DNA of 60,672 nucleotides, from assembly GCA_002269645.1 (NCBI GenBank), contig NIVC01001266.1, positions 1-60,672 on the forward strand, written 5' to 3'. Both the position numbers and the translations under genes were made by a program. Origin of the DNA: Macrostomum lignano (lineage: Eukaryota). Shown here piece after piece: positions 26,201 through 35,200 of this stretch (position 1 is the first letter of the stretch; each line of letters starts with the position of its first letter). Below the pieces are notes generated by a model. That model ran no database searches. It had not been told where the DNA came from and saw only the letters and a program-made list of their open reading frames with translations.

Positions 26201-29200
26201 GAGTAACTAGCATCCAGAGAGAGTAACTAGCATCCAGAGAGAGTAACTAGCATCAAGAGAGAGTAACTAGCATCTAGAGAGAGTAACTAGCATCTAGAGA
26301 GAGAGTAACTAGCATCCAGAGAGAGTAACTAGCATCCGGAGAGAGTAACTAGCATCCAGAGAGAGAGTAACTAGCATCCAGAGAGAGTAACTAGCATCCG
26401 GAGAGAGTAACTAGCATCCAGAGAGAGAGTAACTAGCATCCAGAGAGAGTAACTAGCATCCAGAGAGAGTAACTAGCATCTAGAGAGAGTAACTAGCATC
26501 TAGAGAGAGAGTAACTAGCATCCAGAGAGAGTAACTAGCATCCGGAGAGAGTAACTAGCATCCAGAGAGAGAGTAACTAGCATCCAGAGAGAGTAACTAG
26601 CATCCAGAGAAAGTAACTAGCATCCAGAGAGAGTAACTAGCATCCGGAGAGAGTAACTAGCATCCGGAGAGAGTAACTAGCATCCAGAGAGAGTAACTAG
26701 CATCCAGAGAGAGTAACTAGCATCTAGAGAGAGTAACTAGCATCCAGAGAGAGTAGATAGCATCCGGAGAGAGTAACAGCAGACCAGGTAACTAACTAGA
26801 GTCCATAGCAGGGTGCCAACCGATCCCAACAAGAAATTCGCATCTCGGCGTTGGCAGTGCATCGGCCAGGTCCCACTCTCTCAGTCCAGCGTCGTCACAC
26901 CGACGCCGGGGCGCCGCGGCGGCAGCCGTGAAGCACCAGCTGCAGCCGCAGCATCGAACGCCCGAAGAGCGAGCTCAGCTGCGCCAGTGGATGGAGCAGC
27001 GTCGCAAGGAGCAGCTGGGGCAGTACCGCAAGCAGAAGCAAGAGCGAAGAGAGGCTGAGGCGAGGCCCTATCAGGGTGGCGCCGGCGGCGGCGGGGCAGC
27101 ACCCACCGTCTCCGACTGGAAAGCTGCCGAAGCCGAGCGTCAGCGACGCCGGGAGCAGCTACGCGCTGAACGCGAACAACGCGAAGAGGCTCACCTCCGC
27201 CGCCTGATGCAGGAGGACCTGTCCGGCGCGGCCTCCTCTGGCGGACTTCGCGACTCGCACGAGGCCATCCGACCGCGCCTCGAGCCGCAGAAGTCGGCCA
27301 TCCAGCTGATGGAGGAGGAGCTGGCCATGGAGCAGCGCCGGATGGCCGCAGCAGCTAAGGCCGCTTCGAATTCGTCGAGAAGGAACGCCAAAGACGAATC
27401 CGGTCGTCAAGTCGACTCGGGCTTCGGTCTGAGAGGCGAATTCCAGACTGACGCAGAGTACGAGGACTACCTGAACCGGATGGTGGAGCTGTCGTCTGCC
27501 GCAGCCTCCGAGGCGATGCTGCAGCAGGCTAGCAGTAACAGGCCGACACCGCGGGAACCGGACTCAGGGGACGAGCTGGTGCCCTACCAGCCGCCGCCGC
27601 AGAAGCCTCTCACCCAGGTAGTTCGAATGCAGCGGCCCGAGTTGACGCGTAAGGGACCGTCGAGGCGACCGGATCCGCAGGCGCAGAGACGGCTGCACGA
27701 GCAGATGCGCCAGACACCAGTGATGATCACGAAACGGCAGGGTGAGTGACCTGTGCTCCGTCCTCTGTGTCGCTTCTCATCCCTGATGCTTCTCATCTCT
27801 GATGCTTCTCACCCCTGACGCTTCTCATCCCTGACGCTTCTCATCCCTGACGCTTCTCATCCCTGATGCTTCTCATCCCTGATGCTTCTCATCTCTGATG
27901 CTTCTCACCCCTGACGCTTCTCATCCCTGACGCTTCTCATCCCTGACGCTTCTCATCCCTGATGCTTCTCATCCCTGATGCTTCTTATCTCTCATGCTTC
28001 TCATCTCTGATGCTTCTCATCCCTGACGCTTCTCAACTCTCATGCTTCTCATCCCTGATGCTTCTCATCCCTGATGCTTCTCATCTCTCATGCTTCTCAT
28101 GTCTCATGCTTCTCATCCCTGATGCTTCTCATCCCTGATGCTTCTGATCCTTCATTCTTCTCATGTCTCATGCTTCTCATCCCTGACGCTTCTCACCCCT
28201 GATGCTTCTCATCCCTGATGCTTCTGATCCTTCATGCTTCTCATGTCTCATGCTTCTCATCCCTGATGCTTCTCATCCCTGATGCTTCTCATCCCTGATG
28301 CTTCTCATCCTTTATGCTTCTCATGTCTCATACCCCTAAAACTTTACGTGCTTCCTGAGATTTTCACTAGTTTGACATGAGCAGATCCTAGTACAATTTG
28401 TAATTATAATTGAATTTTAATCGCTCCTAAACAGAAAAATTAAACAATAATTAGTGTCGTTTTACTAAAATATTTTAAGTAGAAAAGCGTTTAATGGATT
28501 TTTTATCAGCAGTTGTAAGAAAATGACATTAAGTTGAGTGTGGCTGTTAAAATACAAGCAAAACATCATATCCGTATTTGTTGATTGATGATGGACTCAG
28601 TGATGAAACAGACTTGCCGATCGCTTCACTCCGATAGTGGCCGCTTTGGCCTCCTTAGTGTTGGCGCACGTGATCAGCAGTTCGCTGCGATAATTTCGCA
28701 TCCCGATAGCCTGATAAATCAGAGCTTTCAGCGCCACGTCCTGGTTGAAGAAGTCCATTTCGATTGGTTTCTGAGGCTGCTCCAGGTACCTGTGGCACAC
28801 CTTCAGTAGCAGCTCCCTGCCCATGTCGAGGACGTTGAGCGGCGGCGGCAGCGAGGAGTTGCTGGCGTAGGAGGCGATGAAGAAGAACCGTTCGAACTGC
28901 CACAGAGCCGTGCTGTTACAGTCGATCTCTTCAATTGTTTTGGAGAACAGGGCGACAATGAGGCTGAGCAGTAGTATAGTTGTGATGGTGACGTACAGCG
29001 GCAGCAGTATGTAGGGTACAATAAAGGTTGACTGAGGATTGGGACAAGGCAGAGTGTTGTTGGTCCTGGCTGTGTACACCTCTTCGCAGTTTTCGCCGTT
29101 CACCGTGTCCAGATGGTACTCGCCGAACACGCTGAAGAAGCAGAATTGCACGAGTCGCTTGGCCATGCTGATTAGGCTCATCCTGTTGGGATTGTAGGCG

Positions 29201-32200: not shown

Positions 32201-35200
32201 TTTCTGGTCGCCCTGAGCAGGGGGTCGAGCTAATATAAGGTGTTTCGTTTCGTTTCGTCTCGCGCATAGAAAAACAGAAGAAGAAACGCAACTTAAGCAA
32301 ACAATGATGGCGGAGGGTTAAGAAAAATTGTAGAGGCTAAATTTACGAGGGTGCGTGGCTAAACCTATTCAATAAACTGTTATTAGCCTTCAAATTCGGT
32401 GTCCAATATATATATTTGTTGTTTCTTAAATTAACCTTGTTTACTGGCGTATTCAAGGACTGAGGCATTAGACGGTTAATAACAGTAAGAAAAGGTCAGA
32501 CTGTCCGTCAGTATTTCTTGATAGTAGCAGTTAGACATATATTTTTATAGACTTTCATAGTTAAGATCGAAAGAAACGGCACACAGATATTTATGCATTC
32601 ATTTATCCTTGGCCGTGTCCGTTGTTTCATTGTTACCCTTGGCGTCGTCAGTGACAGACAGGAAGCCGTTCACCGTGCCTGTCATGAGCTCGGTGGCGTG
32701 CTTGCTCATCCGTTTGCGTTTGTTGCGCTGCTCCCAGGCTAGCAGTTCCTCGGGTTTGACTCCGCCGCCTTTCATTCCTGCGCTCGGTTTGATGGGGGAA
32801 ACGATGTGGTTCTTTGAAATGCATTTCATTTAGCTCCTCTCTAGAGACATTCGTGCTTTTTCCAAGGGGCATTCGGTTCCTTTCTAAGGACGTTTTACAT
32901 GTAGCTCCTTTCTAAGGACATTCGGTTCTTTTCGAAGACATTTTAGCTCCTTTTCTAAGGACATTCGATTCTTTTCGAAGACATTTTAGCTCCTTTCTAT
33001 GGACATTCGGTTCCTTTCGAGTACATTTTAGCTTCTTTCTAAGGACATTCGGTTCTTTTCGAGGACATTTTAGCTCCTTTTCTAAGGACATTCGATTCTT
33101 TTCGAAGACATTTTAGCTCCTTTCTATGGACATTCTATTCCTTTCGATGACATTTTAGCTCCTTTCTAAGGACATTCGGTTCCTTTCGATGACATTTTAG
33201 CTCCTTTTCTAAGGACATTCGGTTCTTTTCGAAGACATTTTAGCTCCTTTCTAAGGACATTCGGTTTCTTTCGAGGGCATTTTAGCTCCTTTCTAAGGAC
33301 ATTCGGTTTCTTTCGATGGCATTTTAGCTCCTTTCTAAGGACATTTCAGCTCCTTTCTAAGGACATTTCAGCTCCTTTCTAAGGACATTTCAGCTCCTTT
33401 CTAAGGACATTCAGTTCCTTCCTTCCAAGGACATTTCAGCTCCTTTCTAAGGACATTTCAGCTCCTTTCTAAGGACATTTCAGCTCCTTTCTAAGGACAT
33501 TCGGTTCCTTCATTCCAAGGACATTTCAGCTCCTTTTCTAAGGACATTCGGTTCTTTTCGAGGGCAAATGGTAACTTTAAATAACTCCCCTACTCGAGTG
33601 CCGGACTCACCGGGACAGTCCCAATCAAAGAATCGATCCCACGTGCTCAGGTACGGCTGGAAGTTGGTCAGCGGTTTCATATGGTGCATGTCGTGCTTGC
33701 GACTGCCGCCATAGAGTCCGAAAGGCACAAAAGTGCTCAGACTGAACCAGATGTCCAGTCCTGAGTGCGCCTCAACAGCCAGCCACACGTTCATCAGCAT
33801 CCACACCCAGCAGGTCATTGGATGGCATCGGAAGAACCACGGATCCACGGTGGTCAGTAGGCCAATGGTGAACAGCTCCCACGGGTGCAGGTACTGGCCA
33901 ACCAGGGCGAAGCTGGTGTGGTACTGATGATGAGTGGAATGGAAGTTCTTGTACAGCCAACGATTCTTGTGGTGCACCGCGTGCCAGACTCCGTATTGAA
34001 AGTCGAAGATCACTAGCAGAGCCGTCAGCTGGCCGAAGAACTCCAGCGCTGTCGGGGCCTTAGCTGGCAGAGGCGTCGGCGGCACCCAGATGTACTGCGC
34101 CACCGTGACTGGGAGCACGTACAGGAAGTTATTAGTCATCACCAAGGCTAGGCACTTCTTCACCATTGGCCAGGTGATCTCCTTCTCCGGCTGCAGTTTG
34201 TAGCTCCGGTACCAGGCCCAGCGGCTGGCGCACAAGTCGAAGAATGTCATGGGGAACACGGTGGCAAAGTAGAAGCCCACCGAGATGAACACTGGGAACA
34301 GGGGGGACGCCAGCGTGTCCTCGTATCCGGCACGCAGATCCCACACGGTTTGCATGATTCCAGCTTCCAGCAGGCTGCTGGAATCGGAGCCATTGTCCGG
34401 CATTTTTTCCAAGGTGGAATACTCAGTATTTCTCAACTGCTTAGAGCGCTAAGCTTGCTTAAGCTGGAACAGGTGCTCTTGTTTCGCTATCTTTTAAATA
34501 CCAGTCCGTGCTAGGCCGTTTCTGCTGGCTGTACCCTGCCCTTATTTTTAACTTTCTAATCTCTGACATTTCTTCTTATCAGCAAAATTATGGCCCCACT
34601 CTCGGTCAGTGAGCCAGTATCAAGCGCTGCTAAATTAATGATTAAATTTACCTACTAAAGTTCTTATTACTCTACTGTAAGTAGAAATCTAAGCAGAACA
34701 GGCGAAATCGAAGCCAAATTGAATCCAAATAATTAGATGGGCCACTCAGGCACATATTCATAGTAAAACAGCTTTCTACTTTCAGCTCAGTAGCAAAGAA
34801 GAATACATAAGCTATTTTATAAAAATAAAGGCAGCTGAAATTACTTTGATAAGTTTAGAAGCCCAAGCTTGCAGGCAGGCGTAAACAGCTTGCTAATTGG
34901 TTCAGCAATAATGTACATTGGCCACTAAAATGTACATGGCAGCTTTAGGCTGCTAGAATTCCGAGAAAGGCGATAAAAATTGGGGCGGGGCGGGGGTAGT
35001 GTGGAAAGGCGCGGTTGGAGGGTTTAAGCTGGGGGGATAATAGTCAATAAATGAGCCTTGGCTTTAAAAATACATTAAAATGCTTCTGTTTAGCTTACTA
35101 CTGAACTGAAAGTAGCTTAACACGCAAATGTGCTGAGTAAGCCCATCTAGTGATTCTAGTATTTGTGGTTGAATCCGAATTAAGCGTCACCGTCTGACTA

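Follow-up and report, generated by a model that had tools for sequence, protein, structure and literature searches.

Tandem arrangement of a cholesterol-25-hydroxylase-like gene and an ankyrin-bearing TRPM-like channel gene in the flatworm Macrostomum lignano

Introduction

In the flatworm Macrostomum lignano, 30-39% of the genes are spliced to a spliced leader (SL) and about 15% reside in operons, 75% of which comprise two genes (PMC8629364, PMC5730564). The SL is 35 nt long and ends in ATG (PMC8629364); its 3' part reads …CTCAATTTATTGCATG. The published operon rule calls for immediate neighbours on the same strand, a repeat-adjusted distance below 1 kb, and an SL-spliced downstream gene, while the modal intercistronic distance is about 100 bp and the motifs reported for this species are YTNCAG for the acceptor and GT[G/A]AG for the donor (PMC8629364). 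Moreover, conserved genes and genes of stem cells are over-represented among the SL-spliced and operon genes, and lineage-expanded sensory channels are not (PMC8629364). This paper describes two neighbouring minus-strand genes, encoding a cholesterol-25-hydroxylase (CH25H)-like enzyme and a TRPM-like channel, on M. lignano contig NIVC01001266.1 of assembly Mlig_3_7 (GCA_002269645.1), which was analyzed over its whole length of 60,672 bp and is referred to as the window.

Surveys of the TRPM and TRPS channels describe both families as devoid of ankyrin repeats (PMC7306681). In the schistosome channel TRPM_MCLZ (Smp_333650), the target of meclonazepam, ankyrin-repeat modules replace the NH2-terminal MHR1/2 or SLOG region, and the group name 'TRPM-like' has already been published for ankyrin-bearing flatworm channels (PMC11731825, PMC12861061). 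A sequence-only reading of the window had proposed that the gene pair may form a co-transcribed sterol 'maker plus sensor' module inside a cilia gene, and had pointed to the steroid gating of some TRPMs such as TRPM3. The analysis presented here describes the structure, family membership, and copies of both genes, the spacer between them, and the conservation of their linkage, and weighs four accounts of their adjacency.

Results

On the minus strand of the window, a two-exon CH25H-like hydroxylase gene (323 aa) and an intronless channel gene (1147 aa) downstream of it are separated by 558 bp, and according to the public annotation both are nested antisense within a late intron of a host gene. 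The open reading frames (ORFs) agree with the positions assigned by the sequence-only reading, i.e., a hydroxylase stop at 32599 and a first channel ATG at 32040 on one strand. Its attribution of the DNA to a flatworm also holds, as the channel ORF is 100% identical to an M. lignano Mlig_3_7 protein encoded on two contigs of that assembly, NIVC01001266.1 among them. GenBank keeps the hydroxylase (323 aa) and the channel (1147 aa) as stand-alone genes, which supports their being separate.

Exon 1 of the hydroxylase gene runs from the ATG at 34403 to 33611 on the minus strand and encodes amino acids 1-264 plus 1 nt, including the PF04116 domain; its last G precedes the donor GTGAGT, which was read directly from the sequence. 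The 833-nt intron (33610..32778) consists mostly of a 42-bp tandem array at 32902-33548, as detected by Tandem Repeats Finder (TRF), and its acceptor cgcag, ending at 32779-32778 and followed by GA, opens exon 2 (32777..32599, including the stop codon 32601-32599). Spliced in this way, the 323-aa product is letter-for-letter identical to GenBank PAA77330.1 (BOX15_Mlig021145g3), which is annotated on the third copy of the locus. The hydroxylase is absent from the GenBank annotation of NIVC01001266.1. Transcripts that overlap repeat annotations are left out of the GenBank M. lignano set (PMC5730564), and the gene probably went unannotated on this contig because its tandem-array intron overlaps such an annotation. 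The missing annotation was for the same reason rejected as a sign of non-expression.

The PF04116 domain of the hydroxylase scores 76 bits against a cut-off of 31. Its three histidine boxes (HxxHH; H141/H144/H145, H155/H158/H159, and H237/H240/H241, encoded at about 33681-33983) as well as a further histidine, H213, are invariant in an alignment of nine sequences. The 63 database relatives are 38-63% identical; every one that carries a functional name is called 'cholesterol 25-hydroxylase(-like)', the others being unnamed or generic, and the named ones, from molluscs, a nemertean, a hemichordate, and fish, show 40-56% identity over 84-96% of the length. By sequence, the product of the upstream gene is a membrane hydroxylase of the di-iron type and belongs, within the fatty-acid-hydroxylase superfamily, to the cholesterol-25-hydroxylase branch; 'CH25H-like', the name used in the sequence-only reading, is a fair label for it that the named relatives and the intact histidine boxes bear out. 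A literature search on CH25H in Macrostomum returned nothing.

The channel is encoded by a single intronless ORF of 1147 codons on the minus strand (32040..28597; ATG at 32040, stop at 28597), in agreement with the annotation. Ankyrin repeats occupy the region encoded at about 31728-31180 near the N-terminus (Ank_2, 105 bits), followed by a TRPM2-like/MHR4 region (PF25508, about 30534-30178) that scores 26.9 bits against a cut-off of 27, the S1-S6 ion-transport domain recognized by Pfam (about 29727-28921), and a TRP box, LWQFER (28905-28888), that aligns with VWKFQR in Nematostella TRPM2. The pore motif is FGEY, and the Pfam scan gave no SLOG/LSDAT (MHR1-2) match in the channel. Seven ankyrin-bearing relatives were scanned for PF25508, and six of them have it as well (above 27 bits in five), as does one relative without ankyrin matches.

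When the C-terminal 661 aa were compared with the PDB, the best 60 of the 153 sequences matched belonged exclusively to TRPM1-8. The best match, Nematostella TRPM2 (6co7, 4.7e-33), is continuous from MHR4 (residue 579 onward) to the TRP box. TRPM3 (about 1e-28) scored no better than Nematostella TRPM2 (5e-33) and near TRPM5, 7, and 8, with the transmembrane core alone aligned; the channel is not a TRPM3 orthologue and has no special affinity to TRPM3. The identities that the sequence-only reading gave to the two genes are essentially right, with the amendment that the TRP channel is a TRPM-like protein bearing ankyrin repeats. An AlphaFold2 model of the channel, built from a three-sequence alignment, reached a mean pLDDT of 43.6.

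A homology search with the whole channel was swamped by ankyrin proteins and served for paralogues and one fused gene model, and a word-index search with the ankyrin-free C-terminus recovered a single paralogue besides the query and the fused model; the family became apparent in an exhaustive HMMER search. Six of the eight closest relatives scanned share the architecture of ANK, TRPM2-like, and Ion_trans domains, and the trematode Opisthorchis, a liver fluke, has a homologue that combines ankyrin repeats with an ion-transport domain. Judged by its domains, the channel is a member of the already known flatworm group of ankyrin-bearing TRPM-like channels of the TRPM_MCLZ type. The M. lignano members fall into at least nine gene clusters, namely Mlig023207, 019746, 030565, 020550, 012389, 033956/026745, 022043/007691, 004154, and that of the channel described here; no description of such an expansion in a free-living flatworm was found in the literature searched. 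Both the channel gene and its 52%-identical paralogue Mlig023207 (locus L001, 10001-13405) are intronless, and the more distant Mlig019746 (locus L002, 4412-11965) spans 7.5 kb with introns, a pattern suggesting that the two intronless genes go back to an old retroposition.

The complete nested arrangement of host gene, hydroxylase, and channel is present in three assembly copies, and both ORFs are intact in all of them. With NIVC01001266.1 as reference, and outside repeats, NIVC01001778.1 (L003) is 0-0.15% diverged and NIVC01000751.1 (L005) about 1-2%. The spacer differs from that in NIVC01001778.1 by five gapped columns without mismatches and is 1.8% diverged from that in NIVC01000751.1, and at 0-2% divergence a comparison of spacers among the three copies has no power to detect conservation. 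The 42-bp array in the hydroxylase intron varies in length among the copies, with 89 and 320 gapped columns. For the channel, 26 synonymous and 7 non-synonymous differences separate this contig from NIVC01000751.1, and the resulting pN/pS of 0.08 indicates purifying selection; the hydroxylase offers too few differences among the copies for a selection test. The three copies are consistent with the duplicated large chromosome and the heterozygosity of the DV1 line. Their presence is a consequence of the redundancy for which the DV1 assembly is known, and because they are only 0-2% diverged the linkage that they share carries no evolutionary weight.

Linkage of the two genes was encountered nowhere else. 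A tblastn search with the hydroxylase detected nothing within 10 kb upstream of Mlig023207 and nothing within 4.4 kb upstream of Mlig019746, which is 34-36% identical to the channel. Conversely, the CH25H-like loci of Dimorphilus, Tubulanus, and two eukaryotic metagenome contigs gave no match to the channel core (tblastn, E up to 1), the neighbours of these four genes being G-protein-coupled receptors, IntS11, and unrelated ORFs. The check for conserved linkage that the sequence-only reading had proposed returned the pair only in the three near-identical, recent copies, with neither the two paralogues inspected nor the four other taxa having the partner gene.

The spacer extends for 558 bp from the hydroxylase stop to the channel ATG (32598..32041 on the minus strand) and is AT-rich, as had been noticed before, with a GC content of 41% vs about 48-54% in the gene-holding 2-kb windows. 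It contains no tandem repeat (TRF), and neither another ORF nor an annotated gene lies in 32041-32598. Its minus strand has no AATAAA or ATTAAA, an absence that by our own estimate chance alone would produce in about 40% of spacers of this kind. A polypyrimidine tract with 19 pyrimidines in 22 positions starts at 32291 and is followed by an AG at 32260-32259. Its presence upstream of the channel is as the sequence-only reading had said, but its value as a signal is not, since Markov shuffling of the spacer yields a run equal in strength to that at 32291-32266 in 14% of cases, and 14% of all the 558-nt windows of the contig contain one (P about 0.14). Likewise, the single match to the published SL-acceptor motif YTNCAG (TTACAG, 32150..32145, after which an exon would start at 32144) compares with 0.96 expected. 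Candidate acceptors in the spacer would place exon starts at 32144, 32131, 32212, 32258, and 32118. The last of these follows an in-frame TAG (32121-32119), from which the channel frame is open onward (from 32118); this TAG acceptor differs from the preferred CAG. Trans-splicing at 32118 would set the terminal ATG of the SL in frame with the channel and add 26 codons; an open frame of that length upstream of the channel ATG is not significant, at (61/64)^26 or about 0.29.

When the spacer was compared with the 600 bp preceding two paralogues in search of common promoter or acceptor elements, the scores did not exceed those of shuffled sequences. The SL sequence itself has no match in the contig, as expected, nor in the fetched loci including the related hydroxylase transcript L006, which has a 221-nt 5' untranslated region without SL and no canonical poly(A) hexamer near its end.

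In two UniProt entries, A0A1I8G0G7 (1114 aa) and A0A1I8GAY4 (1149 aa), the channel ORF continues hydroxylase exon 2 in frame. Both entries use a weak minus-strand donor, GTGAAC after ACG (GT at 32673..32672, junction 32674/32673). This donor departs from the published GT[G/A]AG (PMC8629364), and its use deletes the conserved C-terminus of the hydroxylase, a stretch of exon 2 beyond the donor (…GTVNGFLS…) that is kept in two related transcript-derived proteins (P0121 and P0122). The models disagree on the spacer: A0A1I8G0G7 splices to the AG of the in-frame TAG, with its exon starting with AAG at 32118, and the other adds a mini-exon (32212-32138) that then needs a 19-nt 'intron' (32137-32119), the sole effect of which is to skip the in-frame TAG. 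M. lignano models in WormBase ParaSite bear MAKER/SNAP-style identifiers (PMC5196486). Given the disagreement, the 19-nt intron, and the deleted C-terminus, the models were rejected as evidence of a dicistronic or fusion transcript; the two entries are almost certainly mis-fused prediction artefacts that should be split.

The host gene surrounding the pair lies on the plus strand (<18597..36079 in the public contig annotation, extending below 18597) and has a product of 3240 aa. That the pair sits inside another gene, as the sequence-only reading had it, agrees with the annotation. Its description as a cilia gene found less support: one host exon ORF (26928-27749, plus strand) has a sub-threshold match to PF15392, 'Joubert syndrome-associated' (23.7 bits vs a cut-off of 27), and 17 other plus-strand ORFs yielded no match. 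The single PF15392 match is therefore a weak hint of a ciliary identity. The host product is similar in length to CPLANE1, a Joubert syndrome protein of humans, and a putative relation to it would fit the cilia gene of the sequence-only reading.

Four minisatellite arrays of 9-39 copies lie around and inside the pair, at 26000-26781, 27772-28324, 32902-33548, and 35509-35847, with units of 20, 16, 42, and 36 bp, respectively; the 36-bp array overlaps plus-strand ORFs at 35267-35837, close to the 3' end of the host gene. Elsewhere in the window, what may be a small tandem cluster is indicated by minus-strand ORFs with AIG1/GIMAP-type GTPase domains at 55542-59414 (105 bits for 56502-57173, plus pieces at 55542-56054 and 58905-59414), and a minus-strand ORF at 48266-49006 has weak, sub-threshold EF-hand matches. 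Finally, some 2-kb blocks have an extreme strand composition, with an AT skew of +0.75 at 10001-12000, a GC skew of -0.39 and then +0.52 over 36001-40000, and a GC skew of -0.39 at 54001-56000; these blocks are probably further satellite or low-complexity arrays.

Discussion

The account that we favour, while giving it no better than an even chance, is that of two independent tandem genes. Each of two separate, intact, and constrained genes would yield its own protein, the 558-bp spacer would most likely contain a promoter from which the channel is transcribed, and the two genes would be neighbours by an accident of the locus, without sterol-signalling meaning. A channel of this type appears expressible without an upstream cistron, since the annotation shows no gene within 10 kb upstream of the intronless paralogue Mlig023207. 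Further support comes from the conserved C-terminus of the hydroxylase, the purifying selection on the channel, the missing partner genes at the two paralogues inspected and in four other taxa, the class of genes enriched for SL splicing, and the chance level of the splice signals in the spacer. Whereas the gene structures, families, purifying selection, nesting, and lack of linkage elsewhere are shown by the analysis, independent transcription and the lack of functional coupling are inferred. Several observations weigh against this account. Same-strand neighbours less than 1 kb apart are what the species' own positional operon rule describes, no canonical poly(A) hexamer separates the genes on the minus strand, two gene predictions fuse them, and a promoter in the spacer is not demonstrable from sequence. 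Furthermore, a rough Bayesian estimate for co-transcription, based on published totals of about 6,000 downstream operon genes and about 71,500 genes with a mean intergenic distance of a few kb, came close to even odds. It was shaded down to somewhat below even in view of the class of genes enriched for SL splicing, the lone paralogue Mlig023207, and a spacing above the operon mode. An ordinary two-gene SL operon is accordingly the strongest competitor, a substantial possibility that we place below the independent genes; it would have a promoter upstream of 34403 and a dicistronic pre-mRNA, and would imply no shared pathway. With that same standing, the hydroxylase mRNA would be cleaved and polyadenylated in the spacer and the channel mRNA capped by the SL at a CAG/AG acceptor at about 32260-32118. 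That flatworms possess SL trans-splicing and operons, a premise of the sequence-only reading, holds for M. lignano, where both are common, as are operons of two genes (PMC8629364). The pair is adjacent and in one orientation, antisense within the host gene, with no opposite-strand transcript between its members; the spacer is repeat-free and offers candidate acceptors, and the intergenic distance at the transcript level is necessarily below 558 bp. The next minus-strand gene in the annotation ends about 7.5 kb upstream of the hydroxylase, which would make the latter the first cistron. Against an operon stand the chance frequency of the acceptor motifs, a spacer far longer than the modal intercistronic distance, a channel type outside the class enriched among SL-spliced genes, and the apparent expression of Mlig023207 without an upstream cistron. 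A literature search on Mlig021145 and Mlig023207 gave nothing on their trans-splicing or expression.

Both remaining accounts are far less probable than two independent genes or an operon. The least probable of all, and one that we consider highly unlikely, is a single gene for a hydroxylase-channel fusion protein ('chanzyme'), as in A0A1I8G0G7 and A0A1I8GAY4. Two public models do join both parts in frame, the channel frame extends upstream without a stop as far as the AG at 32120-32119, and the topology would be compatible, as the hydroxylase C-terminus and the ankyrin repeats would both be cytosolic. These points are offset by the conflict over the spacer exons, the 19-nt intron, the weak donor that strips a conserved C-terminus, and the style of the model identifiers, and the transcript-based GenBank annotation separates the genes. 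Very improbable too, if slightly less so, is the co-regulated 'maker plus sensor' module, in which an oxysterol made by the hydroxylase would gate or modulate the neighbouring channel. The enzyme is CH25H-like with intact catalytic histidines, the genes are adjacent and both appear to be constrained, and TRPM3 is steroid-sensitive. Since TRPM_MCLZ is opened by a lipophilic molecule and none of the natural ligands known to us acts on channels of its type, the module escapes outright dismissal. TRPM_MCLZ, the characterised member of the group, is gated by a small lipophilic drug for which binding in the S1-S4 pocket has been proposed (PMC12861061). On the other side, the linkage is confined to three copies that are 0-2% diverged, both of the paralogous channel clusters inspected (among at least nine) have no hydroxylase neighbour, the CH25H-like genes of four other taxa have no TRP neighbour, and the channel is no nearer to TRPM3 than to other TRPMs. 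These comparisons lend no support to the module proposed in the sequence-only reading, and functional coupling of hydroxylase and channel, which draws on adjacency and on general knowledge of oxysterols and TRPM3, is unsupported. That enzyme and channel would be co-expressed, in an operon or otherwise, with the oxysterol product as the natural ligand of the channel class, is in our estimation a long shot, and a variant in which a minor cis-spliced isoform would fuse both into a 'chanzyme' is even more exotic.

As it stands, the adjacency of the two genes means little, as many tandem neighbours are spaced by less than 1 kb in a genome with about 15% of its genes in operons, and neither gene family is new. 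The by-products of the analysis are the exposure of the mis-fused UniProt/WormBase entries A0A1I8G0G7 and A0A1I8GAY4, and the large family of TRPM_MCLZ-type channels in M. lignano, a free-living model amenable to transgenesis. If it were true, the sterol link would provide a testable natural-ligand candidate, and a first physiological agonist, for a TRPM-like family that includes an anthelmintic target.

Compared with described systems, the gene pair resembles the SL-resolved operons of M. lignano (PMC8629364), or transcriptional units (PMC5730564), in that two genes are adjacent on the same strand at less than 1 kb. It differs from typical operons of this species in that its 558 bp exceeds the mode of about 100 bp. 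The identity of the hydroxylase to CH25H-like proteins is 45-56% for those of molluscs, a nemertean, and a hemichordate and 42% for one from a fish, and it shares with CH25H and the invertebrate 'CH25H-like protein 1, member 2' the PF04116 domain, three invariant histidine boxes, and a small, intron-poor gene. It has one repeat-filled intron, whereas the CH25H-like genes of Dimorphilus and Tubulanus are intronless, and its C-terminal extension is common only to the closest, probably flatworm, transcripts.

As in canonical TRPM channels, the region of the M. lignano channel from pre-S1 to the TRP box aligns to the structures of TRPM2, 3, 5, 7, 8, and 4 (E 5e-33 to 1e-21); its pore motif is of the FGE type and its TRP box has the form WxFxR. 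Unlike these, it has no SLOG/MHR1-2, NUDT9H, or kinase domain and carries canonical ankyrin repeats. In joining ankyrin repeats to a borderline MHR4 match and to the transmembrane core and TRP helix of TRPM channels it is like Schistosoma mansoni TRPM_MCLZ, the likeness being one of architecture; a point of difference is that gene clusters for ankyrin-bearing TRPM-like channels number at least nine in M. lignano.

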